Positions 20,489 to 60,623 are shown, numbered from the stretch's first letter. The stretch: 64,000 nucleotides of DNA from Zygnema circumcarinatum SAG 698-1b (GCA_037447605.1 CM074806.1:4402001-4466000), one strand, 5' to 3'. Program-made: numbers and translations. Notes: a model not told the origin generated them from the letters alone.

Positions 20489-20543
20489 AGTAGAATTCTA
20501 ATAAACAATTCCGAAGTAAGGAAGGGAAGAGGGTGATGTTTGA

Positions 20544-20860
20544 TTGAACTCACGATGGCAAGGCCATCAAATGTACATGGATAGAATCGACATAGGGAAC
20601 CATAAGAAGCGGTCACAATGGACATAAGGACAAAGAGAAAGCCTCAAAACGGAAAGCGACTTCTAGGCTCGACAACAAGGCACTAGAAGCATCCCGAAGG
20701 GAAGTAGAGGAGAAAATTTCATTGAAGTCACGATGGCGAGGCCATCAAATGTACATGGACAAAAGCATGATGTGGAACCACGAGGGACTGGTCGCAAAGG
20801 ACCTAAGCACAATAGAACAAAGCAACGAGCGGAAGTAGAGGCCGTTTTATAAAACACTTT
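20544..20860 (+). mobile_element. Two same-orientation terminal remnants of the long-TIR element family
   Basis: Core TTGAACTCACGATGGC(A/G)AGGCCATCAAATGTACATGGA at 20544 and 20722. The first matches the reverse complement of ~24600-24731 and the second that of ~30170-30288. Confidence 0.75.
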
Positions 20861-21056: not shown

Positions 21057-21400
21057 ATGTACATCCTTATCCCAGAGTCCAAAAAAGTACGAGCTACAAA
21101 AGGAATTTGTCTTTACACCCTTACCACCCTATGAAAGAAATCCAATGAGGACATGCCATGTGCCAATGGTACACGTGTCGTTTGGTGATTCGTGCGGATC
21201 GCCACTGGTACAGGCTACATGTATATGAATCCAAAAAACAGTTAAACGGTGGTTTCAACTACAACACGACACGGAACCAACGTTTTCGTTGAAGGAAGGA
21301 GCAAGGAACGCCTCTCCAACCCGCCAGAGTCCCTGCTCTCTCCCTCTCAGGGGGCGCCACGTGGCGGCCTCTACACTCCGCAACAGGACAGCCATGGCTG
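21057..21400 (+). promoter_or_regulatory. Orphan copy of the CRTISO-like gene promoter/5' leader, ending at its ATG (21394)
   Basis: Colinear with 30350-30617 and 36945-37270 (CCAATG..ACACGTG..GGTGATTCG..GCAAGGAACGCCTCTC..GGCGCCAC..GCAACAGG..GCCATGGCTG). Confidence 0.8.
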
Positions 21401-21750
21401 GGTGTGGGGTTGCATTCTTCAGTGGCCGCTACTTTAGAACGATGCGAAAGCGCAAGAGGATGGCTCCTCCAAATTTTGGCCCGTCTAGTGGGATTGCTGG
21501 ATGGTGGCGGCATTGGGAGAGCTTGAGAAGCCTCCTTCAAAACGTTTTTGCAAAACGAATGCAAGAAGTGCCGCAAACTGTTTAGTAGCTCGTTATAATG
21601 TTGGGGTGGCATGGTCATCATGGGTCGTGAAAGGTTGGCCCCAGATTTAAGCCCCCAGTGTTGGGCCTCCAGTGCTTTTTGTGTCATCGATTTGCCCCAT
21701 TTTACCTCAAACTAGTCACAAGAAGTGAAGTATTATTCCGTACGGTACGG
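21397..21750. repeat. Dispersed repeat 'module B' downstream of mTERF copies (other copies ~26611-26978 and ~33316-33700)
   Basis: Three colinear copies, e.g. GGCCGCTACTTTAGAA..GCGAAAGCGCAAGAGGATGGCTCCTCC..GGCCCGTCTAGTGGGATTGCTGGAT. Confidence 0.85.
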
Positions 21751-22017
21751 TGATCAGGCAGCCGTAACTATTGGAGACTTCCAGGAAGCTTCCTGGACAT
21801 GTCTCTCTCTCTCTCACTCTAAAACAATGAAGCCCGAATAACAAATGCGCATTTCTTTGTGGTTTTCTTCTTTTCCTTTTTTTTTTTTTTTATGGAACGA
21901 AAGGTCACGTGGGGAGTTCAACTGACAGCATTGCCATAGCCAAACATACACAAAAAAAAAAAAAGTCTTTGGGCCTTACAATGCTCTCTCAGCACATGTT
22001 CAAACCACAGCTCCAAC

Positions 22018-23208
22018 TTACATCTGTTGCGGTATCAAGTGCACTTTAAACTTGTCCATAAAAGCAGCGTTCGTATATCTGAACAACAACCCCAGAGCAT
22101 ACTTTTTGTGATCAATTCCGGCCTCCACCAGCGCCCTGTACCTCGGCTTCAGCCGCTTCTCAAGAGATAAGCGCAGTATGTATGGGTCCATGTGGAGCTC
22201 CTCCTTGCTACGGCCCATCTCAGTCAATACGAAGTCAATCTTGGATTTAATAGTATCCCAAGACATGCTAAGCAGTGAGGAGTTCGCTTTCACCATTCTC
22301 AAGGCTGGAACGTCCCCGAAGTGCTGCTTCAGCTGCTTATACGTGTTATCCATTGTGCCCCATGGTGCTACTAGCATACTTGCGTTACACTGCAGCACTT
22401 TCTGAGCACTATCGGGCCCGAAAATCCCCTCCAATCCAGCCACAACATCCTTCAAGTGATGGCCCTTTTTTCTAACGATGGAGGGGAAAAGAAAAAACAA
22501 TCTCCCTCCTGCCTCGTCAGGGAAGGTCGACCTCACAGCCTCAACTCCCTCCTTTATTGTTTCAGGACTGCAGCGGAGAATGTGTGGGTACGTCTCCAGC
22601 ATGGCGCCTGTGACAGGGACGCCTAACTCCTTGAATAGACGAGCCTTCGCCTCAAGAGTCTGCACACGGTTAGTTAAAATTTCCGGCATTTTTCTTATCA
22701 CCTGCCCTAAGTTCGTCACCTTCATAGTGTTCCGAAGGAACTCGATCACGGGTTCCTGCCTCTCATCTGGAGCGAGAAGCAAGTTGTTGTGCCAGAAGCT
22801 GCGCTCTAATGCGTTGAAAAAGTCGTGGGAGTTGACCCCATGGCTCTGGAAGAAAGCTGCTTTAGGGAGGATATGCTTATAGCCCCTTACAAGGACACTC
22901 CTCTTCTTATCAACTATGCGGTGGACTTGCTGCTGAGTGCATCCCAAGCTCAGGAGAGCATCCACTGCTTCTCGGAGAGTCCTCGTAGATTCCGCAGCTT
23001 CGTCCTCATCCACGGTGGCTCTGCCTGCACTCGCTTTGTCAAGTTTTTTTCCCTCCTTGCTGCTGCTGCTGCTGCTGCTGTACCCATGGCGCCCTTGAAG
23101 GGACTGAGTGCAAGAGAGCTGTTCAAGGGATGGATGATACCATGGTAGGCGGAACGGAGATCCGTTCCAAACGGTCCGGCGAAAAAAAGGAAGAAAGGAA
23201 GCCGCCAT
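22018..23208 (-). CDS. mTERF: mTERF-family protein, copy 1, single long ORF with an N-terminal organellar transit-peptide-like sequence
   Basis: Likely start is MAASFLPFFRRTVW (the ORF track begins at an upstream GTG). Repeated mTERF motifs (KMPEILTNRVQTLEAK, YPHILRCSPETIK, PYILRLSLEKRLKPRYRAL). Confidence 0.9.
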   Translation of the reverse strand: MAASFLPFFRRTVWNGSPFRLPWYHPSLEQLSCTQSLQGRHGYSSSSSSSKEGKKLDKASAGRATVDEDEAAESTRTLREAVDALLSLGCTQQQVHRIVDKKRSVLVRGYKHILPKAAFFQSHGVNSHDFFNALERSFWHNNLLLAPDERQEPVIEFLRNTMKVTNLGQVIRKMPEILTNRVQTLEAKARLFKELGVPVTGAMLETYPHILRCSPETIKEGVEAVRSTFPDEAGGRLFFLFPSIVRKKGHHLKDVVAGLEGIFGPDSAQKVLQCNASMLVAPWGTMDNTYKQLKQHFGDVPALRMVKANSSLLSMSWDTIKSKIDFVLTEMGRSKEELHMDPYILRLSLEKRLKPRYRALVEAGIDHKKYALGLLFRYTNAAFMDKFKVHLIPQQM

Positions 23209-23314
23209 GGCGCGAACTTCTGAAGCATGCGGCCGCTGATAGAGAGTCACTTCCTCATGTCTTGCTGCACAAGGCTTCCAGCACTCAACCCTAATCTGTT
23301 AGAGCCAATTCTGA

Positions 23315-23368
23315 CCCTAATCCTTACCCTAATCCTAACCCTAACGCAAACCCTAACCCTAACCTTAA
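23315..23368 (-). repeat. Degenerate telomere-like (TTAGGG)~9 array upstream of mTERF copy 1 (also ~28812-28866 and ~36582-36636)
   Basis: + strand reads CCCTAA TCCTTA CCCTAA TCCTAA CCCTAA CGCAAA CCCTAA CCCTAA CCTTAA, a 6-bp period. Confidence 0.85.
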
Positions 23369-23464
23369 GCATGAGCTTGACCTCGCTCTAAAATCGTTCG
23401 CCATATCTCTAATCTGAGCCCTCTCCTGCCCGATATCATGCATTGACCTTGTTGTTAGCAATGC

Positions 23465-24196
23465 AAAAATGAAATCAGAAAGACATTACAGTACTGTAAA
23501 CGAGACAATCCAATACACTCCTATGCGTTGTATGGTCGGCATTATTAAATGCATTATCACATTTGGCATTCCCATGGTGATAGTAATGCACATTTCTCGC
23601 CCATTATCACCAATTGCACTCTCATCATTACTATCAAAAGGGGAAGAAAGAGGCGCACTGAGGGATGCGAGGCTGCAGAAGTGCAGAAGAACCTGCTTAC
23701 TGTACTATCCCCATTGCATAAAAAGTAAAATGTCACACAACATGGAACTGTTGCCGCACTGTGGAAAGACGCACTCCGGCACTGCAACGGGCCTGCAACT
23801 GCAACACGAACTGACCGTGTGCTACGCGTTGCATGGAACGGGTCACACGTGCCGCTCCCTTCAACGAGCGCCTGGCGCGGGTCCCCCTTGAGCATTTTGA
23901 CCTTTCTTGGGTCATGGTTTGATGATTATTGCAACGGAAATTAAATTTGGGCACACGCAGAGCACGGCAGTGCGAGATGCTATGTTCGGAAAAAACTGCA
24001 TTTCACGGACACTCATTTTGATGTAAATTTCGAGTTTTTGTACGAGAATCGAACAAACAAACAAACACAAACCAGAAGAACTTTTGCATACACAAACGGT
24101 AACAATGTTCGACCTGCCGTAGAAACAACAACACAATGCCCTCCTCCCTGACCTGCTAACTAAGCACAACTTTTTTTATTTATAGCCGATCATTAA
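23465..24196. repeat. Dispersed repeat 'module C' upstream of mTERF copies (also ~28965-29692; partial copies 26985-27459 and 36710-36945)
   Basis: Colinear copies. 23941-24256 appears identical to 29437-29752 by eye. Confidence 0.85.
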
Positions 24197-24731
24197 GTAG
24201 CAGAAAGGGTAAAATGGCATTGAACTCACGATGGCGAGGCCATCAAATGTACATGGACAACATCAGCATGGAGAACCACGAGGAACTAACCGGTGGCAAG
24301 CACCTAAGCACAAAGGATTAAAGATAGGAGCGGAAAACTACGCCTAGGCGCACCAACGCAGCCCTCCCTCGAAGCAGCCGCTGAGGTCACCGATGTGCGC
24401 CAAATCGCGCGGAGGGAGGGAGGGAGGGAGGGAGCGGCGGAAGGCCACCGCAAGAGCGATGGGCGCACTAACCAAACGGCGTCGTCGAGGCAACAAAGAA
24501 ACCTCAACAGCCATAGGAACAAACTCGTCGGCTCCCTCCTCGCGATGTGATGGGATGTGCCGCTCATCGATCGGTGACCCGGGTGCTTCTAGTGCCGTGT
24601 TGTGAGCCTAGAAGCAGATTTCCATTTCGAGGCTTTTCTCGTTTTCCTTCGGTCCTTTGTGACCGCTTCCACTGGAACCCTGTGTTGATTTTATCCATAT
24701 ACATTTGATGGCCTTGCCATCGTGAGTTCAA
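24197..24731. mobile_element. Non-autonomous long-TIR element (MITE-like), copy 1
   Basis: TTGAACTCACGATGGCGAGGCCATCAAATGTACATGGA near the left end and its reverse complement TCCATATACATTTGATGGCCTTGCCATCGTGAGTTCAA at the right end. No coding capacity. Confidence 0.75.
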
Positions 24732-25227
24732 CTAAATGAATGTTGTTTCTCGTTCTCTACGTCGATTGTAATGTACGGATGTAAGGTCGTACGGTAGAAC
24801 TGTACTGCTAATGGCTGGATTCAAGCTAGAAGGCGTTCAATGGCAATGGTTGTACGCTCGTTTAAGAAGTGTTCTCAAACTCAGAAATCAATGGAATCGT
24901 TAATTCATCATTTTAAAGATATTTGAACGTTCTAACTCTGGAATCTGAAACTCTAAAAGTCGCTTGTACAGACAAGTGTACTTGTGTCACACTAGGCGAC
25001 ACATCTGTATAACAGCTTGATGGTGGGTGTGCTGTTTTTTTCTGGTAAAATCAGATTGATAACCGATCTTACGTCGTTCCATGAGATGAGGATTTGGGGG
25101 CGTTTAGAGTAAGCTTTCAGTGTTAATGTCGAGTTTATGGACGATTCGAGATCAAGAGTGTTTTAGTCTACGCTTTTAGTTGTTGTTGTTGAGCTCATCA
25201 ACAGTGGCGTGTGATGGCTCTCTCCAG

Positions 25228-26285
25228 GTTGAGGTCATGCAACCAATGTCAATGTCCTGTTGGGCAACGGGCGTTTCTATGCAGTGCAAACCAATGCTCG
25301 GCTGGCTGCAGTTGAGGCACAGCTGAAGGAACTGCAGTTGCAGGACAAGCTGTTGGCCCCCGGAGACGTCCTTCCTTAAAGGGGTGAACGGGTGATCGCC
25401 TTTTTCAGTGGCGACAACAGTTGGGCCAGGGGGCTGGTGAGGATGCCTGGCCTGACTTCTCACTTAAAAATCAGAGTCAAGTCGAGTTTCGTACAGAGGT
25501 ATCAAGACTGAAGCGCACTATGTGCTTCCTATCTGTTAGTTGCAGATCGCTATCTCAACGGTATCCCAAGCTTATTGCAGACTGTGCATCCAAACCACAG
25601 GTCGTGAATGCTCCTCGGCCGGAGGAGACTGCTTCTGGAAGTGCAGAATACGAAATCTTTTATAATGACTATGGCAATCAGGAAGTCCTGCCCCTCTCTC
25701 GGCTACGACGCATCCATCCTTCAATGGCTGCAAGTGACGGCTTGGCCCTTCTATGCCAGCTGGCTCTCGTCCGCATCCCGAAACTTGAAGAGGACTTTGG
25801 AATGGAGGCGGCGGAGTGGTTGGGACGAAACATTGTGGGCCAAAAATATGTGGCATGGATTGAAGAAAGAGATTGGAGCAATGGGAAGGTGAAGGTGAAG
25901 GGGCAGGTGACCGGCCCCTGCCTCCTCGTCACACTCGTTCAAGCTGAGGCACCTTCCGGAACTCCTCCCATCTGCATCAACGCACAGATGCTACAGGTCA
26001 GTTCTTCGCATCCCTCGACGGCTGCCATACAATCTTCAAAGAAAAGGTTTTGGTTTACTTGTGGAATGGTCGGTTTGAAGACACCTTATGATGTAGAATG
26101 AAAGGGGGATGCGGTAATAGATGCAGGAGGGCTTTGCTCGCCTGGCAAAACGAGAGAGGCGTGATAGCGTGGAGTGAAGGGCGGCGCTGGACTGTCTGAA
26201 GGACCATGAGGAGGTAGCTGAACATGAGGCAGGACAGAGACATTGATGACGACGATGACGATCAGCGGCCGAAGTGGGGCCCACC
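25228..26285 (+). pseudogene. TSN: Tudor-SN (staphylococcal nuclease/Tudor) pseudogene fragment, last three exons with introns
   Basis: Exon 25228-25436 (LLGNGRFY..LP*RGERVIAFFSGDNSWARG, TAA at 25377), exon 25601-25996 (YEIFYNDYGNQEV..LCQLALVRIPKLEEDFG..EERD..INAQMLQ) and exon from 26127 (EGFARL..*RAALDCLK, TGA at 26175). Matches the plant Tudor-SN C-terminus. No 5' part is adjacent. Confidence 0.88.
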
Positions 26286-26344
26286 TCGTCAGTAGTTGCA
26301 GCCTCGACAGTTGCAGGGTGGCGGGGGTTGGTTCTCAAGGTGTG

Positions 26345-26484
26345 GGCGCCCCCTTATGGCGCCCCCTTATGGCGCCCCCTTATGGCGCCCCCTTATGGCG
26401 CCCCCTTATGGCGCCCCCTTATGGCGCCCCCTTATGGCGCCCCCTTATGGCGCCCCCTTATGGCGCCCCCTTATGGCGCCCCCT
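26345..26484. repeat. Perfect 13-bp minisatellite (GGCGCCCCCTTAT) x10 plus a partial unit
   Basis: Ten identical units from 26345 to 26474, then GGCGCCCCCT. Confidence 0.97.
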
Positions 26485-27469
26485 GGCATGAGGCCCTCGT
26501 GTGGCCGGAGACGAAGTTTTGGGGGCGGTGCGAGGAATAACGCGAGGGGTGGTTGCTTTTAAGTTCTTTTGCTTTTTTAGGGGCCGAAAGGCGGCACCCC
26601 TTGAGCACCTTCAGCTCCTAAAAATGCTTCGCTGTGTGTGGGGTTGCAATCTTCTATGGCCGCTACTTTAGAAAGACGCGAAAGCGCAAGAGGATGGCTC
26701 CTCCAATTTTTGGCCCGTCTAGTGGGATTGCTGGATGGTGGCGGCATTGGGAAATCTTGAGAGAGCCTTCTTCCTACCTCTTTTGCAAAGCGAATGCAAG
26801 AAGTGCCGCAAACTGTTCTGTAGCTCGTACGAATGTTGGGGTGACATGGTCATCGCGGGTCGTGGAAGGTTGGTCCCAGTTTTAAGCGCCCTGTGTTGGG
26901 GCTTCAGTGTTTTTTGCGTCATCGGTTTGCTCCATTCTACCTCCACCCAGTCACACGTCGTGAAGAGCTATTCCGTACAAAGCGCCGGCTTACTGTACAG
27001 TACTGCGCCCCCCATTGCATCCAATTTAAACTGTCACACAACATGGAACTGTTGCCGCACTGTGGAAAGACGACACGCCGGCACTGTAACGGCACTGTAA
27101 CTGGAACACGAACTGGCCGATAATCCGCGTTGCATGGAACGGAACACACATGCCGCTCCATTCAACGAGGGCCCGGCGCGGGTTCCATTTTGGAGCAATT
27201 TGAACTTTGGGTCGTGGTTTGATGATGACTGCAACGGGCATTGAAATTGGGCACACGCAGAGCACAGCAGTGCGAGATGAGATGTACGAAAAAAACTGCA
27301 TTTCACGGGCACTCGTTTTCAGTGAAAACTACGAGAATCAAACAAACAACGACCGAACCAAAAGAACCTTTGCATACACAAACGGTAACAAGGTTCGATC
27401 AACCGTAGAATCAACAATGCCCTCCCTCCCTGGTCTGCTGTCTAAGCACAACTTTTTTTGCCTCACGCA

Positions 27470-28545
27470 TCACCCTGGTATAAGCTGCCCTCTGTCCACC
27501 TCCTCATCCTCAGTATCCTCAGGTATCAAGTGCACTTTAAACTCGTCCATAAAAGCATCGTTCGTAGTTCTGAATATCAACCCCAGAGCATACTTCTTCT
27601 GATCAATTCCGGCCTCCACCAGCGCCCTGTACCTCGGCTTCAGCCGCTTCTCAAGAGATAAGCGCAGTATGTATGGGTCCATGTGGAGCTCCTCCTTGCT
27701 ACGGCCCATCTCAGTCAGTACGAAGTCAATCTTGGACTTGATGGTATCCCAAGACATGCTAAGCAGTGAGGGCTTCACTTTCACCATTTTCAAGGCTGGA
27801 AGGTCCCCGAAGCACTGCTTCAGCTGCTTATACGTGTTATCCATTGTGTCCCGTGGTATTGATAACATACGTGGGTTGTGAAACACTTTCTGAGATCTAT
27901 CGGGCCCGAAAATCCCCTCCAATCCAGCCACAACGTCCTTGAAGTGATGGCCCTTTTTTCTAACGATGGAGGGGAAAAGAAAGAGCACATCCTCTCCTGC
28001 CGCGTAAGGGAAGGTCGACCTCACAGCCTCAACTCCCTCCTTCATTGTTTCAGGACTGTAGGAGAGAATGTTTGGGAAGGTCTCCATCATGGCGCCTGTG
28101 ACAGGGACGCCTAACTCCTTGAATAGACGAGCCTTCGCCTCAAGAGTCTGCACACGGTTACCCCAAATTCCCGGCATTTTTCCTATCACCTTTCCTAAGT
28201 TCGTCACCTTCACAGTGTTCCGAAGGAACTCGATCACGCCTTCATACCTCTCATCTGGAGTGAGGAGGAAGTTGCTCTTCAAGAAGCTGCGCTCTAATGC
28301 GTTGAAAAAGTCGTGGGAGTTGACCCCATGGCTCTGGAAGAAAGCTGCTTTAGGAAGGATATGCTTATAGCCCCTTATAAGAACACTCCTCTTCTTATCA
28401 ACTATGCGGTGGACTTGCTGCTCCGTGCATCCTAAGCTCAGGAGAGCGTCCACTGCTTCTCGGAGAGCCCTTGCCGAATTCGCAGCTTTTTCCTCAGCCC
28501 TGGTAGCTCTGCCTGCAGTCGCTTTGTCAAGTTTTTTTTCCTCCT

Positions 28546-28577
<32 letters not shown>

Positions 28578-28705
28578 TATCCATGGCGCCCTTGAAGGGA
28601 CTGAGTGCAAGTGAGCTGTTCAAGGGATGGATGGTACCATGGTAGGCGGAACGGAGATCCGTTCCAAACGGTCCGGCGGTAAAAAGGAAGAATGGAAGCC
28701 GCCAT
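27470..28705 (-). CDS. mTERF: mTERF-family protein, copy 2, with a novel acidic C-terminal tail
   Basis: Intact ORF from MAASILPFYRR, colinear with copy 1. Ends ..HLIPEDTEDEEVDRGQLIPG* instead of ..HLIPQQM*. Confidence 0.9.
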
Positions 28706-29692
28706 GGCGCGGACTTCTGAAGCATGCGGCCGCTGATAGAGAGTCACTTCCTCATTTCTTGCTGCCCAAGGCTTCCAGCACTCAACCCTAATCTGTTAGA
28801 ACCAACTCTGACCCTAATCCTTCCTCTAATCCTAATCCTACCACAAACCCTAACCCTAACCTCAAGCATGAGCTCGACCTGACTCTAAAATCATTCGCCA
28901 TATCTCTAATCTGAGCCCTCTCCTTCCCGATAACATGCATTGACCTTCTTGTTAGCAATGCAAAATTGAAATCAGAAAGACATTACAGTTCTGTATCCGA
29001 GTCAATCCATTACACTCCTATGCGGTGTATTGTCGGCGTTATTAAATGCATTATCACATTTGGCATTCCTGAGGTGATATTAATGCACATTGCTCGCCCA
29101 TTATCACCAATTGCACTCTCATCATTACTATCGAAAGGGGAAGAAAGAGGCGCACTGAGGGATGCGAGGCTGCAGAAGTGCAGAAGAACCTGCTTACTGT
29201 ACTATCCCCATTGCATAAAAAGTAAAATGTCACACAACATGGAACTGTTGCCGCACTGTGGAAAGACGCACTCCGGCACTGCAACGGAACTGCGACTGAA
29301 CACGAGCTGACCGTGTGCTACGCGTTGCATGGAACGGGTCACACGTGCCGCTCCCTTCAACGAGCGCCTGGCGCGGGTCCCCCTTGAGCATTTTGACCTT
29401 TCTTGGGTCATGGTTTGATGATTATTGCAACGGAAATTAAATTTGGGCACACGCAGAGCACGGCAGTGCGAGATGCTATGTTCGGAAAAAACTGCATTTC
29501 ACGGACACTCATTTTGATGTAAATTTCGAGTTTTTGTACGAGAATCGAACAAACAAACAAACACAAACCAGAAGAACTTTTGCATACACAAACGGTAACA
29601 ATGTTCGACCTGCCGTAGAAACAACAACACAATGCCCTCCTCCCTGACCTGCTAACTAAGCACAACTTTTTTTATTTATAGCCGATCATTAA

Positions 29693-30288
29693 GTAGCAGA
29701 AAGGGTAAAATGGCATTGAACTCACGATGGCGAGGCCATCAAATGTACATGGCCAACATCAGCACGGGGAACCACGAAGAACTAACCGTGGCAAAGGACC
29801 CAAGCACAATAGAAAAAAGATAGGAGCGGAAAACTACGCCTAGGCGCACCAGCGCAGCCCTCCCTCGAAGCAGGCGCTGAGGTCACCGATGTGCGCCAAA
29901 TCGCGCGGAGGGAGGGAGGGAGGGAGGGAGGGAGGGAGGGAGGGAGCGGCGGAAGGCCACCGACACGAGCGATGGGCGCACTAACCAAGGAAAGGCATCC
30001 AAACGGGCCTCGTCGAGGCATCCAAGAAATCGCAACAGCCATAGGAACAAACTCGTCGGTCACGTCATGTCACGTCTCCCTCGTCGCGATGTGCCTCACA
30101 TCGGTGTCCTTCGCGGCTGCTTCTAGGGGCTGCGTTGTGCGCCTAGGCGTAGTTTTCCGCTCCTAGCTTCGTTCTATTGTGCTCAGGTCCTTTGCGACCA
30201 GTCCCTCGTGGTTCCACATCATGCTTTTGTCCAGTTACATTTGATGGCCTCGCCATCGTGAGTTCAATGGAATTTCCTATTCTCCTAC
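29693..30288. mobile_element. Non-autonomous long-TIR element (MITE-like), copy 2, with ~170-bp imperfect TIRs and a possible TAA TSD
   Basis: Left GTAGCAGAAAGGGTAAAATGGCATTGAACTCACGATGGCGAGGCCATCAAATG..GGAGCGGAAAACTACGCCTAGGCGCAC pairs with the reverse complement of the right end. TAA lies at 29690-92 and 30289-91. Confidence 0.8.
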
Positions 30289-30612
30289 TAAGTAGCTCTT
30301 GCGATGGCAAATCTAACTGTCTTGTTAGGAGCCCATTACCTAAAAAAGTCTCCCAATGAGTCTACGACACGTGTCCAATGGTACACGTGTCGATTGGTGA
30401 TTCGTGTTTTTTGGCTACTGGAACAAGTTCCATGTACATGAATACAACAAGCCGTTACACGCTGATCTCAACTAGGACGTGACACGGAACCAACGTTCAC
30501 TGAACGGAGGAGCAAGGAACGCCTCTCTCTAACCCGCCAGTCCCTACTCTCTCTCTCACATGGGAGGCGCCACTTGCCGGCCTCTAGTGAATCCTCTGCA
30601 ACAGGGCCAGCC

Positions 30613-31782
30613 ATGGCTGCTGCTCTTTTTCTCCCCCTTCTCACTGCCCATTGTAACGATTTTCTTAGACCTAACTTCCTTCTCTCAGAGGGAATCCGCC
30701 ACCCTCACAAATCTCAAATTAGGGTTGGCTCTGAAAACCACCACGCGGCAGCAGTACGCATGCTTTCTGGGCTCACAATCGCTAGGAGCGCCACACGGTG
30801 CAGACATAGGGCTTCCGTGGCAATTTATGATATTGCAAATTGGTCAGGGGAGAAGGATTCTATGGATGGAGGAGAAGACGAGGGGTTTCAGGGCGAGGAA
30901 GGAGAGGCAGCGCTTAAGGAGTCGGTGCTGCCGGAAGAAGTGGATGTAGTGGTAATAGGGGCCGGGCTTGGTGGTATATGCTGCGCTGCTCTGCTCGCCA
31001 AGTATGGCCTCAGGTACGTGCCAGCATGCAAACCCGGAACGCATTGTTTAGGTTTGTATGGATTGGAGTCATGCGGTAATGCTGAAGGTGTGCAAATACA
31101 GGTTCCCGGATGCGGAGTTTCTTCTCTCGATGTGTCTCTTCACCTTTCTCTGACCCCCCTTCCTCTCCCTTTCGTCTCTCCCAACTCGTCTCTTTCCCCT
31201 CTTTCCTTCTCTTCCTCTCTATCTTCCTCTCCCTCGACATGTCCTGCTCCCGCTCCCTCCCTTTCCTCTCCATCCCCTTCTCACTCCCTCTCTTCTCTCT
31301 TCTCTCTTCTCTTCTTTTTCATTGCCAATTTTTCTCCCCCTCCCCCTCGCTCCTCTTCTCTCCCCCTTCCCTCGCTACTCCCCCCTCCCCCTTCCCTTGC
31401 CCCTCCCCCTTTCTCCCACCCCCCTCCATCCTCCCCCTACTTTCCCTCCCCATTTCCCCTTTCCCATCNNNNNNNNNNCCCCCCCCCCCCCCCCCCCCTC
31501 TTCAGCCCTCTCGCCCCCCTCCTCAGCCCTCTTTCCCCCCCCTCCTCAGCCCTCCGCCCCCCCTCCCCCCTCTCTCTCTCTCTCAATCTTTCGAGTATCT
31601 GACGACGGCAGAGGGAGGGGGGAGGGAGGATAGGGGTGCCGAGCAGTGTGGGGGTCTGCGAGAGTCACACGATCCCTGGAGGCGCCGCTCACTCCTTTGT
31701 TCGCCGCGGTTTCCACTTCGACTCCGGACCGTCCTTCCACGCCGGCTTGTCCTTGGACAAATCCCTTAACCCGTTGAAACAG
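30613..31782 (+). pseudogene. 5' fragment (exons 1-2 only) of the CRTISO-like oxidoreductase gene
   Basis: Exon 1 30613-31013 (..VVVIGAGLGGICCAALLAKYGL) and exon 2 31647-31782 (VGVCESHTIPGGAAHSF..DSGPS). Homology to the full copy stops at ~31809. An N-gap lies in the intron. Confidence 0.85.
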
Positions 31783-33104
31783 GCAAGTTCCTGCATTTAC
31801 TCTCACTCAGCCAGTCTGATTGATACACCACTACACTTTTTGTGAACAACCTCAAGCCATCCTCCCAACCAGCCAATGCATCCATCCAAATGATGCAAAA
31901 GACTGCGAAGATAGGAAACGGTCCCACCACTGATGGGAAAATGATCCAATGGCTTAAATACCTGCAGAGGCACAGGCTGAGGGAAGGGTCGGCTCGTCGC
32001 TAGCAGACCTTCATATAAGGCATCAGTACTGTACCAGGAAGAGCACCGACAGACAGGTAAAACAAATGGCCAAAGCTGACTTGCAACGAATGCCTCCAGC
32101 ACATGTTCTCTGCTTCAAGTTCCATAAACAGAATGGCCCTTATAAATTTCAAACGGGACGTCGCAATTGGAGTTGAGAAGGCAGAGCTTGGCATGGTCGT
32201 GGTAATGGCAGAACCCCTACAGTGAGCGGACGAATGCACAAGAGCAATCCCTTCTCTTGAAGACACTGCAGGGAAAAGAGGAGCTCACCTGATGCATGGA
32301 CCTCTGGGCAGTCTGCGATGCCTGGACGAGAACCCACCCCCTGATGCCGTCGATCGTTCCATATAATAAGTGCTGCAGCTGCATCCACCCATCCCATAAG
32401 GCCTAGGAATGACTAGTGAACAAAGGCTACTCATACATGGATCACCTTCAGGTATATAGAAGAGAGACGAAGCGAAGACCTATCTTTCAAAAACTACTAG
32501 CAGCCAAGAACTGTTGGAAGCAAAGCTTGGAGTTACGGGGCACATCTATCAAAAGTACCGCATGGGCTTCTGTTTTTAGTGAACATAAGGTACTACTCCT
32601 TAGACAGAGCAGCACATATCCACCCTTCATGGCCTAGACCATCTTGTAACACCTGCTGTTTTTTAGCATGGCATTTGGGACTGTCATTCTGGAGGCTGCG
32701 TCAAAGCAGGTGAGACGAAAGGTGGTTTTGGAGTAGAGCTTCGTGTCAGCCCTTTGTGTGGCGCAGTCAAGCACTTTAGTCTTTGTGAAGATTCTTCAAT
32801 CTGTGGCAGGTTATGTATAGTGTAGAGGCTTTTTTATTCTGTTGTGCAATTTTGGATGAAGCGTGCTCAGGTTTGGTCGGTGATGAGCGCTTAAGTTCGG
32901 GAAGACGGAAAGCAGAATCTGTCTTAGTGAACTTCGGGAGTTGCTTGATCTGAATAGCTGGAGACTATCCAGTTCAACGATTGTCTCGAAAGCAATTGTT
33001 GCTGTTTGATGAGGCGCCTGATTGTCTGTGGGAAACAAACGTGAGAGTGGTGTCAGCTCGTGACTTACATGCTGATCTGAGCATCCTGATCTGATTTCTC
33101 ACAG

Positions 33105-33325
33105 GCCGCAACCAACAAAGCACGAGCATTCTTACCATTTTTACAAATGACAAGGAGAATGCCGGCCGTGGTGGACTATGTCCTCAGCGGGCACCGTTTC
33201 AAGCTCATTGTTCCACGGGAGATGTGTGCTATTGCTTTCTCACTTGCCGGAGTGCGGTGCCCTGAGAAGGGGGAGACGAGACAAACGAGACAGACGAGGC
33301 AATTGCATTCATGCGTCAGCTCCTA
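33105..33325 (+). pseudogene. TSN: Isolated upstream Tudor-SN exon fragment
   Basis: After a ttctcacAG acceptor: AATNKARAFLPFLQMTRRMPAVVDYVLSGHRFKLIVPREMCAIAFSLAGVRCP, then a frameshifted DEAIAFMRQ. Matches the plant Tudor-SN SN3/SN4 region. Confidence 0.85.
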
Positions 33326-33978
33326 AAAATGCTTCGCTGGGTGTGGGGTTGCATTCTTCAATGGCCGCTACTTTAGAAAGACGCGAAAGCGCAAGAGGAT
33401 GGCTCCTCCAGATTTTGGCCCGTCTAGTGGGATTGCTGGATAGTGGCGGCATTGGGAGAGCTTGAGAAGCCTTCTTCTTCCTAACTCTTTTGCAAAGCGA
33501 AGCAAGAAGTGCCGCAAACTGTTCTGTAGCTCGTAAGACTGTTGGGGTGGCATGGTCATCGCGGGTCGTGGAGGGTTGGCCCCAGTTTTAAGCGCCCTGT
33601 GTTGGGCCTTCAGTGTTTTTTGTGTCATCGATTTGCTCCATTTTACCTCCAACTACTGTAGTCACACGTACTGTAGTGGAGTGCTATTCCGTACGGTACG
33701 GCAGTCTAGCAGCCTTACCAAATGGGGACTTCTAGGAAGCTTCCTGGATGTCTCTCTCTCTCTCTAAATGATAAAGGACGAAAATCAAATGCGCATTACT
33801 TTTTGTGTTTTTTTTGTTTTGTTTTTCTTTTGTTTTGTTTCAAATGTTGGAACGGAAGGTCACCTGGGGAGATCGACTGACAGCATTGCCATTGCCAAAC
33901 ATGCGAAAAAAAAAAAGTCTTTTGGGCCCACAATGCTCTCTCAGCACATGTTTAAACCACAGCTCCAACTTACATCTG

Positions 33979-35006
33979 TTACCGTATCGACTTCAGTTTA
34001 AACTTCTTCATAAAAGCACCGTCAGTACCTTTGAACAAGACCCTCAACGAAAACTCCTTGTGATCAATTCCTGCCTCCACCAGCGCCCTGTACCTCGGCT
34101 TCAGCCGCTCCTCAAGGGAGAGCCTCAGTATGTACGGGTTAATGTGGAGCTCCTCCTTGCTACGTCCCATCTCAGTCAATACGAAGTCAATCTTGGACTT
34201 AGTACTATCCCAAGACCTGCTAAGCATTAAGGGCTGCACTTTCACCATTTTCAAGGCTGGAAGGTCCCCGAAGTGCTGCTTCAGATGCTTGTACGTGTTA
34301 TCCATTGTGTCCCATGGTTCTACTAGCATCTTTGGGTTACTCTGCAGCACTTTCTGAGCACCATCGCGCCCGAAAATCCCCTCCAATCCAGCCACAACAT
34401 CCTTGAAGAGATGGCCCTTTGTCCTAACGATGGAGGGGAAAAGAACGAGAACATTCCTTCCTGCCTCGAAAGGGAAGGTCGACCGCACAGCCTCAACTCC
34501 CTCCTTTATTGTTTCAAGACTGTAGCAGAGAATTTTTGGGTAGCTCTCCAGCATGGCGCCTGTGACAGGGACGCCTAACTCCTTGAATAGACGAGCCTTC
34601 GCCTCAAGAGTCTGCACACTGTCAGCCAAAATTTCCGGCATTTTTCCTATCACCTTTCCTAAGTTCTTCACCTTCACAGTGTTCCGAAGGAACTCGATCA
34701 CGCGTTCCTGCTTCTCATCTGGAGCGACGAGGAAGCTGCTGTGCCAGGAGCTGCGCTCTAATGCGTTGAAAAAGTCGTGGGAGTTGACCCCATGGCTCTG
34801 GAAGAAAGCTGCTTTAAGAAGGATATGCTTATAGCCCCTTATAAGGTCACTCTTCTTCTTATCAACAATGCGGTGGACTTGCTGCTGCGTGCATCCCAAG
34901 CTGAGGAGAGCGTCCACTGCTCCTCGGAGAGCCCTTGCCGAATTCGCAGCTTTTTGCTTAGCCACAGTGGCTCTGCCTGCACTCGCTTTGTCAAGTTCTT
35001 TTTCCT

Positions 35007-35045
<39 letters not shown>

Positions 35046-35073
35046 ATCCATGGCGCACTTGAAGGAACTGAGT
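33979..35073 (-). pseudogene. mTERF: mTERF copy 3, 5'-truncated (lacks promoter, ATG and most of the transit peptide)
   Basis: Homology to the other copies ends at ~35073, where the 3' flank of copy 4 begins. The 'M' at 35058 is a GTG and an in-frame TAG lies upstream with no ATG in between. The core frame is otherwise open. Confidence 0.8.
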
Positions 35074-35303
35074 ACCAAATGGAAGCTTCCAGGATGTCTC
35101 TCTCTCTCGCTAAACAATAAAGACGAATATGAAATGCGCATTTCTTTGTGGTTTTTTCATTTGTCTTTTTTTTTTTAATGGAACAGAAGGTTACTGGGGA
35201 GGTCGACTGACAACATTGCCATTGCCAAACATACAGAAAAAAAAAAAAAAGTCTTTGGGCCTCACAATGCACTCTAAGCACATGTTCAAACCGCAGCTCC
35301 AAC

Positions 35304-36476
35304 TTACATCTGTTGCGGTATCAAGTCCACTTTAAACTTCTCCACAAAAGCAGCGTTTTTAGAAAAGATTAAGGACCACAGCGAAAACTTCTTGTGATCA
35401 ATTCCGGCCTCCACCAGTGCCCTGTACCTCGGCTTCAGCCGCCTCTCAACAGAGAACTGCAGTATGGACGGGTTCATGTAGATCTCCTCCTTGCTACGGC
35501 CCATCTCAGTCAAGAAGAAGTCAATCTTAGACTTAATACTATCCCAAGGCCTGCCAAGTAGTAAGGGCTCCACGTTCACCATTTTCAAAGCTGGAAGGTC
35601 CCCGAAGTGCTGCTTCAGCTGCCTGTACGTGTTATCCATTGTGTCCCGTGGTACTGATAATATACATCGGTTATTTTGCAGCACTTTCTGAGCTCTATCG
35701 GGCCCGAAAATCCCCTCCAATCCAGCCAAAACATCCTTCAAGTGATGGCCCTTTTTTCTAACGATGGAGGGGAAAAGAACGAGCACATCCTCTCCTGCCT
35801 CGGGGAAGGTCGACCTCACAGCCTCAACTCCCTCCTTTATTGTTTCAGGACTGTAGGAGAGCATGGTTGGGTAGCTCTCCAGCAGAGCGCCTGTGACAGG
35901 GACGCCTAACTCCTTCCATAGACGAGCCTTCGCCTCAAGAGTCTCCGCGCGGTCAGTCATTTTTCCAATCACCTTCCCTAAGTTGGTCACCTTCACAGTG
36001 TTCCGAAGGAACTCGATCACGCCTTCCTGCGTCTCATCTGGAGTGAGGAGGAAGTTTCCGTGCAAGGAGGTGCGTTCTAAGGCATTGAAAAAGTCGTGGG
36101 AGTTGACCCCATGGCTCTGGAAGAAAGCTGCTTTAGGAAGGATATGCTTATAGCCCCTTATAAGGACACTCCTCTTCTTATCAACAATGCGGCGGACATC
36201 CTGCTGCGGGCATCCCAAGCTGAGGAGAGCGTCCACTGCTTTTTGGAGAGCCCTCGTCGAATCCGCAGCTCCTTCCTTAGCCACGGTGGCTTTGCCTGCA
36301 CTCGCTTTGTCAAGTTTTTTTCCCTCCTTGCTGCTGCTGCTGCTGCTGTATCCATGGCGCCCTTGAAGGGCCTGAGTGCAAGTCAGTTGTTCAAGGGTTG
36401 GATGATACCATGGTAGGCGGAACGGAGATCCGTTCCAAACGGTCCGACGAAAAAAAGGAAGAATGGAAGCCGCCAT
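35304..36476 (-). CDS. mTERF: mTERF-family protein, copy 4
   Basis: Intact ORF MAASILPFFRR..DLIPQQM*, with a 4-aa in-frame deletion (GKM----TDRAETLEAK) relative to the other copies. Confidence 0.9.
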   Translation of the reverse strand: MAASILPFFRRTVWNGSPFRLPWYHPTLEQLTCTQALQGRHGYSSSSSSKEGKKLDKASAGKATVAKEGAADSTRALQKAVDALLSLGCPQQDVRRIVDKKRSVLIRGYKHILPKAAFFQSHGVNSHDFFNALERTSLHGNFLLTPDETQEGVIEFLRNTVKVTNLGKVIGKMTDRAETLEAKARLWKELGVPVTGALLESYPTMLSYSPETIKEGVEAVRSTFPEAGEDVLVLFPSIVRKKGHHLKDVLAGLEGIFGPDRAQKVLQNNRCILSVPRDTMDNTYRQLKQHFGDLPALKMVNVEPLLLGRPWDSIKSKIDFFLTEMGRSKEEIYMNPSILQFSVERRLKPRYRALVEAGIDHKKFSLWSLIFSKNAAFVEKFKVDLIPQQM

Positions 36477-37263
36477 GGCGCGGACTTCTGAAGCATGCGG
36501 CCGCTGATAGCGAGTCACTTCCTCATTTCTCGCTGCCCAAGGCTTCCAGCACTCAACCCTAACCTGTTAGAACCAACTCTGACCCTAATCCTTACCCTCA
36601 TCCTAACCCTAACGCAAACCCTAACCCTAACCTCAAGCACGAGCTTGACCTCACTCTAAAATCATCCGCCATATCTCTAATCTGAGCCCTCTCCTGCCCT
36701 GCTGTCCTGCTGAAATCAGAAAGACATTACAGTGCTGTAACCGAGACAATCCAATACACTCCTTTGCGGTGTATTGTCGGCATTATTTAATGCATTATCA
36801 CATTTGGCGTTCCGATGGTGATATTAATGCACATTTCTCGCCCATTACCACCAATTGAACTCTCATCATTACTATCAAGAGGGGAAGAAAGAGGCGCACT
36901 GAGCGACGCGAGGCTGCAGAACTGCAACAGCGCCGGTTTACTGTTATGTACATCCTTACCGCAAAGCCCAAAAAGTGCGACCTTCAACAGGAATTTTGTA
37001 AAACACCCTACGAAGTCTCCCAATGAGTCTATGACACGTGTCCAATGAAACACGTTTCGATTGGTGATTCGAGGGTCGCTACTGGAATCTTTTTCAGAAA
37101 GTAGTTAAACGCTGATTTTGATTAGAACAGAACACGGAACCAACTATGACTGAACGGACGAGCAAGGAACGCCTCTCCATCCCGCCGAGTCCATGTTGTC
37201 GCCCTCTCATGGGAGGCGCCACGTGGCGGCCTCTAGTGCAGCCTCCTCCGCAACAGGGCAGCT

Positions 37264-40200
37264 ATGGCTGCTGCTCTCTCTCTCCCCCTTCTCACTGCCC
37301 ATTGTAATGCTGCCCTTAAACCTAACGTACTTCTCTCAGAGGGAATCCGCCACCCTCACAAATCTCAAATTAGGGCTGGCTCTGAAAACCACCACTCGGC
37401 AGCAGTACGAATGCTTTCTGGGCGCACAATCGCTAGGAGCGCCACACGGTGCAGACATAAGGCTTCCGTGGCGAGTTCTGATATTGCAAATTGGTCAGGG
37501 GAGGAGGATTCTATGTATGGAGAAGAAGTCGAGGGGTTTCAGAGCGCGGAGGGAGCGGCAGCGCTTAAGGAGTCGGTGCTGCCGGAAGAAGTGGATGTAG
37601 TGGTTGTAGGGGCCGGGCTTGGTGGTCTATGCTGCGCTGCTCTGCTCGCCAAGTATGGCCTCAGGTACGTGCCAGCATGCAAACGCGGAACGCATTGTTT
37701 AGGTTTGTATGGATTGCAGTCATGCGGTAATGCTGACGGTGTACAAATACAGGTTCTCGGGTGCGGAGTTTCCTCTCTCTCTATGTCTCTCTTCACCTTC
37801 CTCTGACCCCCCTTCCTCTCCCTTTCGACTCTCCCAACTCTTCTCTTTCCCCTCTTTCCTTCTCTCCCTTTCTAACTTCCCCTCCCTCGACATATCCATC
37901 TCCCTCTCCCGCTCCCTCCCTTCCCTCTCCATCCCCTTCTCACTCCCTCTCCACGCCCAATTTTTTCTCCCCCTCCCCCTCGCTCCTCTTCTCTCCCCCT
38001 TCCCTCTCTACTCCCCCCTCCCCCTTCCCTTGCCCCTCCCCCTTTCTCCCATCCCCCCTCCCCGTTCCCCCTTCCCTTCCCCCTCCATCCTCCCCCTACT
38101 CCCCCTCCCCCTTCCCCCTCCATCCTCCCCCTACTCCCCCTCCCCCTTTCCCCTTCCCCACCCCCCTCAGCCCCCCCTCCCCCAGCCCTCTCCCCCCCCC
38201 TCCCTCAGCCCTCCCCCCTTCCCCCTCAGCCCTCCCCCCCCCTCCCCTCTCTCTCTCTCTCTCTCTCTCAATCTTTCGATTACCTGACGAAGGCAGAGGG
38301 AGGGGGGAGGGAGGATAGGGGTGCCGAGCAGTGTGGGGGTCTGCGAGAGTCACACGATCCCTGGAGGCGCCGCTCACTCCTTTGTTCGCCGCGGTTTCCA
38401 CTTCGACTCCGGACCGTCCTTCCACGCCGGCTTGTCCTTGGACAAATCCCTTAACCCGTTGAAACAGGCAGGTTCCTGCATTCACTCTCACTCAAACTAT
38501 TTCACTTCTTGCTGGTTGGTGTTGAAGGACATGTTCTGGTGACGAATGTCGTCCAATAGCAAAGGGTCGAAACGTTCAACTTTTTTGGTTATGATGAGTG
38601 TTTTTCGTTCTTGATCAGGTCCTCGATGTGTTGGGAGAGAAAGTGGAGTGTGTGACATATGACACATGGATAGGATACCTTCCGGAGGGCCGCTTCACAT
38701 TTAAGGCGAATGCGGAAGCCTATCGAAGTGAGCTCGCAAGAGTAGCAGGGCAGGTGAGAGCAGAAAGCGCATTCACTTCAAGTTTTTCCTCCTTGTGAAG
38801 CTTTCCAATCTTCTTCATGTTTGGACCAATGACAGATAGCTCACTTCACGAGGTGACTTTCTCGAGTGGAGTTGTTCCATGCTCCCGTTGTGACGCTGTA
38901 GTTCTATTACTGAAACATGCCAGGTGGCCCTCAAGGAGTGGATAGAGCTGGAAAAGCGAGTCGCCCCATTGGCTGCTGCAGCTGCTGCATTGCCGGCGAG
39001 TGCCCTTAGGAGTGACCCGGGTGTTGTGTTCACATTAGCAAGGTATCTTCCCGGTCTTCTTCCCACACTTCCGTGGGCTCCATGGCTGCTGCGGCCCTTC
39101 TCCGTTGTTGTTAACGAGGTGAGTCCCTACATGGTGGTGGGCATATCTGTGAATTTAGACAAACCCCAAAAGAGATAAAGGTCAGGTGGAAAAGTATTCT
39201 GTGTCTGCAGTGATGCAGAGCTGATCTGCATCACTTTTCAGGCTCGCATCACATGTGGTTCAAGATAAATCGATGAAATCTCCTTGTTCGGCAGGTTGTG
39301 CAAAACACGTTTCTGCGGCGTCTTATCGATCTCGAGTGCTTTGTTCTTAGTGGCATGCTCGCTGACAGGTACGTTCAGATGCCTCTCTCCCTCATTCATA
39401 GATTCCCCTTCTCTCTCCCTCACACACATTTCCTCACGCACCCTCACTCTCTATCTGTGCCTCTATGTCGCTATTCTACATTGCTACTCTCTTTTGCCAT
39501 TCCGTTCTTCAAAAACGTTAGGATCAATAGGACTGCACATTCAAATACTGATAATGATTGATTGGTTCGTGCAATTCGATTGAATTTTGTGTTCACAATT
39601 CTTCCCCCACTACAGCACCATTACAGCAGAAATGGCGTTCATGTTTTTCGAAAGATCTCGCCCCGAAGGAACGATCGATTACCCTATGGGAGGAGGGGGG
39701 GCCATAGTTGATGCCCTTGTTCGAGGGTTAACTAAGCATGGAGGGAGACTGTTTCTGGGAACACATGTGAACGAGATTATGATCGAAGATGGGAAAGCAT
39801 GCGGTGTGAAAGTAGGGTTAAAAAAAGGGAAAATGGAAAAAGTTATTAGGGCGCGAAAAGCTGTTGTTTCAAATGCATCGATTTGGGATACAGCAAAACT
39901 GCTGCCGACGGAGTCAAAATTTCGACCCATCAAAGAGTATGAGAGCAGAGCAACATCGACAGGAGAAACCGGAAGCTTTCTACATCTGCATTTGGGAATA
40001 GATGCGACAGGTAGACCTTCCTTCTCTATGAGTCCATTAAACACCCTTTCGAAGCCTTAGTTTCGCAAACCCTATTAGTCGATTGAAACTCCAAATTATC
40101 ATTCTAACTATATGAAACCCTAATGGCATGCAGGATTGCCGGAAGACTTGGAGTGCCACCATCTCATAGTGAACGACTGGGAGATGGGAATTGAAGCGCC

Positions 40201-60064: not shown

Positions 60065-60623
60065 GGCTGCTGCAGCTGCGCCTGCTGTTAGAGTGTTGAA
60101 GGGGAAGGATAGGGGAGCAGATGGGGAGAGAGGTCGACTGGAAGAGGATGCAGAGAGGAGATGAGGGAGAGGGTGGGAGGGGGTGGGAGAGAAGTGAGAG
60201 GAGCGCGCGAGAGAGAGAGAGCGCGAGAGAGGGAGATAGGGAGAGGAGGGTAGAGAAGGAGAGAGTAGAGAGACGAAGCAGGAGAGGAAAGCAACCATCC
60301 CTTCTGGGTCCCTCCCAGGACTTCATGGGACCGGCCATTCTATTTAACATTATAGATCCAGTCGCAGTTCCAGTTAAGCTTACAGTTGAAGTCATAGTTT
60401 CATTCCAGTCCAGTTTTTTTTCAGTTAAAGTTACAGTTAGAGTTTCAGAATTTATTTAGGGAATTTTTAAAACGAATGGCTGCTTTTACCAAACCCGTTC
60501 ATACATGGTCGTCGTGCCAGATTCGCGTCTGGAACCGGTTCCGGTCTGCCCTCCAACGGCACAGAGGCGCATGGGACGCCTTGTCTTTCTCGCCCTCTAC
60601 CTCTCCCTCCCTCTCGCTCTCTG

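Follow-up and report, generated by a model that had tools for sequence, protein, structure and literature searches.

We identify what is likely to be a recent, lineage-specific tandem array of nuclear mTERF genes in the streptophyte alga Zygnema circumcarinatum SAG 698-1b, whose products are predicted nucleic-acid binders that diversify at the registers expected to contact their target. The array comprises four minus-strand ORFs, c1 to c4 (Table 1), and lies in a window of 64 kb, i.e. the whole stretch of DNA that was analysed, in which a tblastn search recovered no further mTERF copy. Variability among the copies is in register across the repeats of the fold, and the ratio of non-synonymous to synonymous change (omega) is above 1 at the contact registers and below 1 in the scaffold. 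A preliminary description of this DNA had spoken of four paralogs: four ORFs do lie where it placed them, but c3 is 5'-truncated and hence not a full paralogue.

All four copies match the Pfam mTERF profile (PF02536) with E-values of 1e-20 to 1e-29 (1.3e-28 for c1 and 6.8e-29 for c3) and scores of 74-101 bits against a gathering cut-off of 23.1, which bears out their earlier assignment to this family. The AlphaFold model of c1 (pLDDT 86 overall and >95 across the domain) displays eight three-helix mterf motifs of about 30-34 residues, each made up of two alpha-helices and a proline-capped 3-10 helix, in a superhelix. Its best Foldseek matches are MTERF1-DNA complexes (target-normalised TM-score 0.68), and the top 15 are all MTERF1, MTERF3 and MTERF4. 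PDB sequence searches with the four copies alone returned marginal matches only; a profile built from 69 sequences matched the MTERF1, MTERF3 and MTERF4 chains at E-values of 1e-25 to 1e-30. The fold, along with a basic excess in the mTERF domain (K+R over D+E by 7 to 13), suggests that the array proteins bind nucleic acids. The N-terminal 45 residues are presequence-like, being rich in Arg and Ser/Thr with four R/K and one D/E, and from this presequence-like segment alone we infer organelle targeting.

The four proteins are 75-84% identical to one another, with c2 showing 84% identity to c1. The reading frame of c1 is open as far up as a GTG at 23250, and its ATG stands in the context GCCATGG. 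c3 is without a start codon and some 50 residues of the presequence: its homology to the other copies stops at 35073, an in-frame TAG lies upstream at 35112-35110, and a search for an in-frame ATG found none before approximately residue 138. The studied region ends, at 36476, exactly on the ATG of c4. A relative aligns to the ORF without gaps, in agreement with an intronless coding sequence. The scaffold and motif strings quoted in the preliminary description are all present, including the in-frame deletion in c4 of the P-E-I-L stretch.

Table 1. Features of the mTERF array and its surroundings (positions counted from the first nucleotide of the window)
Feature	Position	Strand	Remarks
mTERF paralogue c1	22018..23208	-	intronless CDS, 396 codons, ATG at 23208
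mTERF paralogue c2	27470..28705	-	acidic C-terminal extension of 15 residues
mTERF paralogue c3	33979..35073	-	5'-truncated; ORF still open, 359 codons
mTERF paralogue c4	35304..36476	-	4-codon in-frame deletion that removes the 3-10 helix of motif 3
Duplication unit 1 (c1 + flanks)	21397..24731		self-BLAST
Duplication unit 2 (c2 + flanks)	26611..30267		duplication map
Duplication unit 3 (c3, truncated)	33316..35073		self-BLAST
Duplication unit 4 (c4)	35081..36944		self-BLAST; adjoins unit 3 at 35073/35081
Conserved 5' flank of c4 (promoter + 5' UTR), telomere-like repeats	36477..36944	-	
Equivalent 5' flank, c1	23209-23703		
Equivalent 5' flank, c2	28706-29200		
Partial copy (first exons) of FAD/NAD(P)-binding oxidoreductase-like gene	30346..31809	+	84% identical to 37013-38494
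Oxidoreductase-like gene, 5' part	37013..38494	+	apparently complete gene; divergent from c4
Foldback/MITE-like element	29692..30289		inverted arms of ~220 nt; inside unit 2
Equivalent foldback element	24196-24736		unit 1
Solo arm of foldback element	20539-20834		

In a self-BLAST, 22031-24731 matched 27522-30267 at 90% and 21397-23109 matched 33336-35073 at 86%. The copies run head-to-tail and the boundaries of the units vary between them. Judged from these matches, the copies arose via segmental tandem duplication. Units of 5.5, 6.5 and 1.3 kb would have copied the gene along with its promoter, and one duplication would also have taken in the first exons of the neighbour, which is transcribed divergently; of the resulting copies, three are complete and c3 is truncated at its 5' end. 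The 5' flanks are 89-93% identical between copies. The neighbour, whose sequence gives NAD_binding_8 and FAD_binding matches, has its ATG about 790 nt from that of c4. The duplication map bears out the tandem array described earlier; its copies are recent duplicates, and the truncated c3 is a sign of birth and death among them.

Alternatively, a Pack-type element flanked by long terminal inverted repeats might have carried the mTERF copies as passengers, multiplying them by transposition without selection on them as genes. Inverted repeats at 20539-20640 and 24635-24736 (84%) do bracket c1, and a further pair at 20703-20834 and 30155-30286 stands at 91%, but these arms are parts of a 600-nt foldback element inside units 1 and 2, plus the solo arm. 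Moreover, c1 alone is bracketed, as units 2, 3 and 4 are without a left arm, units 3 and 4 are without any arm and unit 4 is without the element, and the head-to-tail neighbours with their differing unit boundaries are as expected from unequal crossing-over. We consider amplification as such passengers highly improbable, and we rejected Pack-type transposon capture as the general mechanism because the units do not share one set of terminal inverted repeats at their ends.

Between c2 and c3 the assembly carries a gap, at 31469-31478, within poly-C/CT-rich sequence and at least 2.5 kb from any copy. It falls within the first intron of the partial oxidoreductase-like gene copy, and an alignment across it shows collinearity with the paralogous stretch at ~38150, which has no gap; thus, no mTERF copy or reading frame of the array is touched by it. 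Four public studies, independent of one another, provide contigs of the same organism that match c3, c4 and the c4/c3 junction (35053-35323; the junction contig was found in three runs); they carry no substitutions and differ by no more than one base, within a poly-A run. Hence, the arrangement of the array is not an assembly artefact. High-depth contigs in run X1 extend to 36925. The runs are Logan contigs whose library type is unrecorded, and no more than a single spliced joint, in a neighbouring gene, suggests that run X1 is RNA; on the basis of these contigs the mTERF copies are probably expressed. We considered, and rejected, a leader intron and a splice between c4 and c3, as the contigs contained no such joint; loose contig ends at 36699 and 35308 proved to be sequences of other paralogues rather than splice junctions.

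To locate the differences between the copies relative to the repeats, we used a rotation test in which the variability vector of each repeat was rotated independently. Variability is in register across the eight mterf motifs (P=0.0005), which confirms the hypervariability at repeat-specific positions reported earlier. Its maxima are at +1, +4 and +5, counted from the motif proline, and the body of helix 1 (offsets +10 to +22) is almost invariant. An HMM alignment to human MTERF1 puts R162 at -2, R202, F243 and R350 at +1, and R251 and Y288 at +9, all of which are direct-readout or base-flipping residues in that protein (PMC4705650; PDB titles). The contact registers were placed by repeat register and the MTERF1 alignment. 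Assignment of +4 and +5 depends on F322, as named in the title of a mutant structure, and on R169, which we take to be a DNA contact of MTERF1. The variable positions of the algal proteins accordingly appear to coincide with the DNA-reading registers of human MTERF1, in keeping with the proposal that they lie where nucleic acid is read. Relative to the nearest outgroup protein, the contact registers are 18% identical and the remainder 44-47%. Among the copies themselves the informative sites are in conflict (20/12/9), which indicates mosaicism, with exchange between copies.

We then examined selection with codon models, using our own scripts rather than PAML or HyPhy, on the four sequences. 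In a partition model the five registers (-2, +1, +4, +5 and +9), a partition fixed after the variable patches had been seen, have an omega of 2.8 (likelihood ratio test versus omega=1; P about 3e-6 whichever of the three topologies is used), and this set has the top pN among all 278,256 possible sets. The strict, literature-verified registers {-2,+1,+9} have an omega of 1.98 (P=0.015), which is modest support for positive selection on the verified registers alone. Omega at the remaining repeat positions is 0.5-0.8, which leaves much of the gene under weak constraint. M2a is favored over M1a (2dlnL 27-36, P<=1.4e-6), with approximately 15% of codons at omega 5-6, though recombination between copies can inflate such site-model tests. 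Across the copies, therefore, dN/dS at the variable sites exceeds 1 in the partition, strict-set and M2a models alike, as the preliminary description would have it. A word-based protein search with c1 gave no match and one with the nearest relative (P0001) recovered itself only; accordingly, no closer family members were added to these tests.

The same data bear on the possibility that the copies are redundant duplicates decaying under relaxed constraint, with the in-register pattern merely marking positions that tolerate change. Whole-gene dN/dS is 0.75-1.02 and private changes have an N:S of 2-3.75, near the neutral ratio; c3 is truncated and c4 is minus one 3-10 helix. Relaxation, however, cannot lift omega significantly above 1, yet the contact registers reach 2-2.8 and the M2a class 5-6. 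Likewise, dN at the contact registers (0.25-0.39) exceeds both dS (0.11-0.15) and the divergence of the non-coding flanks (0.07-0.175), which dS approximates, and the helix-1 body is under purifying selection (omega 0.29, P=2e-6). There are also no stop codons or frameshifts across ~1,600 codons, all indels are in frame and the promoter region is conserved; by a rough estimate pure neutrality predicts a few stops per copy, so that the intact ORFs argue against it. Counts of private changes reveal no faster decay of c3 than of the intact copies. We hence regard decay under relaxed constraint as decidedly improbable.

Under the preferred reading of a diversifying array, the hydrophobic scaffold of each mterf motif is held by purifying selection, and the residues round the motif proline (-2, +1, +4, +5, +9) diversify by positive selection and by short-segment exchange between copies. 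In human MTERF1 the motif prolines follow the DNA major groove, and the same registers would there read or flip bases. By extension, each algal paralogue would recognise a different DNA or RNA site, likeliest in an organelle genome or its transcripts, and the array would thus supply new binding specificities.

The preliminary description had gone further in proposing a restorer-of-fertility-like system. Taken strictly, this means that the array competes in an arms race against organellar elements that are selfish or change fast, and that selection favours paralogues able to silence or process certain organellar transcripts, in the manner of RFL-PPR genes and of the Triticeae mTERF candidates. 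We think this reading unlikely. The array does bear an RFL-type signature, namely tandem arrangement, a truncated member, exchange and omega >1 at contact positions, and a clustered mTERF clade of wheat evolves in an RFL-like manner (PMC7759465), with Rf9, Rfp1 and Rfm3 as mTERF candidates. On the other hand, male sterility does not exist in the algal lineage, the Triticeae mTERF restorers are themselves mere candidates, and diversifying selection may just as well mean that ordinary tasks of organellar gene expression were divided among the copies by subfunctionalisation. The evolutionary pattern of the array resembles that of restorer-like genes; a restorer-like role, drawn from this analogy, is a guess.

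It is also a long shot that this streptophyte alga independently evolved an RFL-like repertoire from mTERF instead of PPR repeats, tracking rapidly changing or selfish elements of the organelle genomes. Its fuller form, in which several recombining arrays encode organellar DNA/RNA binders open to re-targeting, and c3 and other truncated copies act as donor cassettes, is similarly speculative. Were such a repertoire real, restorer-type nuclear-organellar arms races would predate the origin of land plants or lie outside it. Setting restorers aside, the diversifying array suggests that mTERF genes expanded recently and independently, under positive selection, in an alga close to the root of the land plants. 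If so, organellar nucleic-acid binders that can be re-targeted rapidly evolve time and again, independently of flowers or male sterility. We know of no recognition code for the mTERF family; the three intact proteins of the array, which differ in their contact residues on identical scaffolds, would be a compact natural series for working one out.

The non-flowering affinity noted earlier stands: this is a streptophyte, and the nearest relatives of the array proteins are 39% identical, followed by proteins of Mesotaenium and Closterium, the best named matches. Of the 20 top relatives looked up, eleven carry a name; all eleven are either Zygnematophyceae or transcriptome entries without a label, with no seed plant among them. 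The one Closterium homologue locus inspected, a single case, is a single gene with introns.

Comparison with human MTERF1 (PDB: 3MVA, 5CRK) reveals the same eight-motif fold, with DNA-reading registers that are those varying in the algal copies, at a sequence identity of only 17-18%. MTERF1 is one conserved gene with one DNA target, whereas the algal copies form an array whose binding is predicted, and not one of the five arginines that MTERF1 uses for readout is conserved as such in them. With RFL-PPR clusters and the mTERF restorer candidates the algal genes share their organization as arrays of organelle-type helical-repeat binders, copy birth and death, recombination and positive selection at ligand-contact residues (in the alga, omega above 1 from four sequences and our own models). 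They differ in that RFL clusters are built of PPR and the algal array of mTERF repeats, and restorers are genetically defined by suppression of cytoplasmic male sterility, a definition inapplicable as such in an alga.

The closest parallels by pattern are in seed plants, where clustered mTERFs under diversifying selection have already been described, so that the algal pattern is not new in kind. The Triticeae restorer candidates cited in the preliminary description (wheat Rf9, rye Rfp1 and barley Rfm3) are indeed in the literature, still as candidates only, and in wheat one clade of mTERFs is clustered and evolves as RFL genes do (Walkowiak et al. 2020, PMC7759465). Seed-plant M-class (group VII) mTERFs are also clustered, with diversifying selection at nucleic-acid-binding sites, and this clade is reported as seed-plant-specific (Zhao et al., bioRxiv 10.1101/2022.01.18.476766). 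Like the algal genes, the M-class and wheat clusters are mostly intronless, of ~370-400 codons, tandem, and form species-specific paralogue clades; they show diversifying selection in PAML, partly at predicted nucleic-acid-binding sites, and have been likened to RFL-PPR genes. What the algal array shares with the M-class is tandem clustering, an intronless coding sequence and diversifying selection at predicted nucleic-acid-facing sites, a likeness of pattern; its nearest relatives are the 39% identical proteins, followed by those of Mesotaenium and Closterium. Given these relatives and the reported restriction of the M-class to seed plants, the algal expansion is probably an independent one, outside land plants.

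Four tandem mTERF paralogs, designated c1 to c4, lie on the minus strand of the window (see table), and all four score 74-101 bits with the Pfam mTERF model (PF02536), whose cut-off is 23.1 bits. The encoded proteins are 75-84% identical to each other, and a tblastn search recovered no fifth mTERF copy in the window. The conserved and variable strings quoted in the preliminary description were all found in c1-c4, and the copy alignment contains the four-codon deletion that it had noted in c4. Translation of c1, c2 and c4 probably begins at an ATG 14 codons inside the open reading frame, judged from the context GCCATGG; in c4 this is base 36476, where the preliminary description had placed the end of the array. 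The nearest relative aligns with the array protein over residues 83-407, i.e. almost the entire domain and the C-terminal tail, with a single two-residue gap near the end, and hence the coding sequences are intronless over this region.

Features of the mTERF array and its surroundings
Feature	Coordinates	Strand	Remarks
c1 ORF	22018-23250	minus	ORF search
c2 ORF	27470-28747	minus	ORF search
c3 ORF	33979-35058	minus	ORF search
c4 ORF	35304-36518	minus	ORF search
Duplication unit 1 (carries c1)	21397-24731		self-comparison
Duplication unit 2 (carries c2)	26611-30267		self-comparison
Duplication unit 3 (carries c3)	33316-35073		self-comparison
Duplication unit 4 (carries c4)	35081-36944		self-comparison
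Telomere-like repeats, c1	~23280-23390
Telomere-like repeats, c2	~28780-28890
Telomere-like repeats, c4	36545-36650	minus
FAD/NAD(P)-binding oxidoreductase-like gene	37013-40543	plus	divergent from c4
Duplicate of oxidoreductase-like first exons	30346-31809	plus	next to c2; apparently partial
470-nt dispersed repeat	23709-24177, 27010-27459, 29206-29673
Foldback/MITE-like element, inverted arms ~220 nt	24196-24736 (unit 1), 29692-30289 (unit 2)
Solo foldback arm	20539-20834		left of c1

An AlphaFold model built from a 69-sequence alignment (pLDDT 86; >95 across the domain) predicts eight motifs, each made up of one long and one shorter helix plus a 3-10 helix. Foldseek searches recovered human MTERF1 bound to DNA as the top matches (target-normalised TM-score 0.68), with MTERF4 and MTERF3 ranking next. 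With positions counted from the 3-10-helix proline of each motif (c1 residues 115, 156, 189, 222, 256, 290, 324 and 356), variable columns concentrate between offsets -4 and +9, peaking at +1, +4 and +5; offsets +10 to +22, corresponding to the body of helix 1, are nearly invariant. The observed concentration was reached in 0.05% of trials in which each repeat was rotated independently. Taken together, the reading frames, the Pfam matches and this in-register test bear out the proposal of a tandem four-copy mTERF array hypervariable at repeat-specific positions.

A profile alignment to MTERF1 (residue number = chain index + 72) placed R162 at -2, R202, F243 and R350 at +1, F322 at +4, R169 at +5, and R251 and Y288 at +9. 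R169 is a putative DNA contact, as is F322, for which a mutant structure exists; all the residues placed by the alignment together define the five registers -2, +1, +4, +5 and +9, with -2, +1 and +9 as the verified ones. The base-flipping structures of MTERF1 carry mutations at R162, F243 and Y288. Direct readout is assigned to R162, R202, R251 and R350, and the prolines of the motifs follow the major groove (PMC4705650).

The copies differ by a dS of 0.11-0.15, comparable to the divergence of the non-coding flanks (0.07-0.175), with whole-gene dN/dS values of 0.75-1.02. For the 40 codons of the five registers, all six pairwise comparisons give a dN/dS of 1.5-8.7, and the MTERF1 register set ranks first for pN among all 278,256 five-register sets. 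In selection tests on four sequences, run with home-made scripts, with recombination known and the partition fixed after viewing the alignment, a codon partition model with shared branch lengths gave an omega of 2.8 at the five registers, with omega=1 rejected under each of three topologies (P about 3e-6), 1.98 at the verified registers alone (P=0.015), and 0.29 for the helix-1 body that forms the scaffold (P=2e-6). The expectation of dN/dS above 1 at the variable sites was thus upheld on these four sequences. Without a prior partition, M2a was favored over M1a (2dlnL 27-36), with ~15% of codons at omega 5-6, and 6 of the 11 high-posterior sites inside repeats fall at +1, +4 or +5. Identity to the nearest outgroup protein is 18% at the contact registers versus 44-47% for the rest. 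The analysis supports, with the above caveats, diversifying selection at the contact registers. Parsimony-informative sites are divided 20/12/9 over the three possible groupings and clustered by segment, a conflict that indicates exchange between copies, resulting in apparent mosaicism.

Self-comparison revealed that c4 and the oxidoreductase-like gene, divergent neighbors with ATGs ~790 nt apart, were duplicated together once (27522-31809 and 35317-38494). Unit 3 stops at 35073, directly beside the 3' flank of unit 4 (from 35081), leaving c3 without its first ~50 codons; c3 has no in-frame ATG before ~residue 138 and an in-frame TAG at 35112-35110. Units 1 and 2 contain ~1.1 kb of inserted repeats, namely the 470-nt dispersed repeat and the 600-nt foldback element, both of which are missing upstream of c4. 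We considered a Pack-type element with long inverted repeats around the copies, but this holds for c1 only, and its arms come from the internal foldback element and a single solo arm, which speaks against capture. Unequal crossing-over offers the simpler reading of the array. Over a 300-nt stretch (23803-24102 and 29299-29598), units 1 and 2 show 100% identity, against ~90% otherwise, suggesting either a young insertion or a tract of recent conversion.

Each complete copy is preceded, at 40-150 nt before the ATG, by ~90 nt of telomere-like repeats (TTAGGG/TTTAGGG type), embedded in a 450-nt flank in which the copies share 89-93% identity; these repeats may serve as a promoter or 5' UTR element of the telo-box kind. 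A plus-strand ORF of 226 codons (25421-26101) with a weak Tudor-domain match (E 2e-5) separates units 1 and 2. The window also contains long CT-rich, proline/serine-coding low-complexity tracts (4377-7600, 31110-31600 and 37709-38300) and two assembly gaps (8066-8075 and 31469-31478), each within or next to low-complexity sequence of skewed composition. The second gap interrupts a poly-C/CT-rich tract and is separated by 2.7 kb from c2 and by 2.5 kb from c3. This tract corresponds to the first intron of the partial oxidoreductase-like copy, and the paralogous 37013-38494 aligns collinearly across the gap site with equal spacing, so the mTERF copies are unaffected by the gap.

Contigs from four public runs, from four studies of one organism, cover the genes at 99-100% identity. 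Parts of both c3 and c4 are recovered exactly, and contigs of three runs span the c4/c3 junction. Over the genes they are fragmented into 130-150 nt pieces, several continuing into near-copies not equal to those in the window, as would be expected if further paralogs exist elsewhere in the genome. Loose contig ends occur in all four runs at 35308, where contigs enter a CAG/AGC-type triplet repeat, at 36699, where they enter sequence similar but unequal to the c1/c2 upstream region, and at 32665; their departure from the window sequence indicates that the organism has further paralogs or alleles. One run (X1), whose library type is not on record, shows high depth on genes and near zero between them, together with one GT..AG joint (32706>33102) in a neighboring spliced plus-strand transcript downstream of the partial oxidoreductase-like copy; this pattern makes it probable that X1 is RNA and that the copies are transcribed.

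In an exhaustive profile search, no more than three proteins reached E≤1e-30. Two transcriptome proteins with 37-39% identity rank highest, followed, among named proteins, by those of Mesotaenium endlicherianum and Closterium; the one Closterium homolog locus inspected is a single gene with introns. Elsewhere in the window, a GDP-L-fucose synthase exon (59438-60298, minus strand) has its best named match in Mesotaenium endlicherianum (82%), the listed land-plant proteins being at 72-81%. These similarities place the genome among streptophytes other than flowering plants, probably in an alga related to Zygnematophyceae.

Among known systems, candidate genes for Rf9, Rfp1 and Rfm3 include mTERFs, and a clustered mTERF clade with RFL-like evolution is described in wheat (PMC7759465); the restorer-of-fertility or cytonuclear-conflict function proposed for the present array is speculation. 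The M-class mTERFs of seed plants, termed higher-plant-specific, are tandem and mostly intronless, with diversifying selection partly at nucleic-acid-binding sites (bioRxiv 10.1101/2022.01.18.476766). The present array shares this evolutionary mode; however, it belongs to a branch of the family for which we found no close land-plant relative, and it probably arose independently of the seed-plant clusters.
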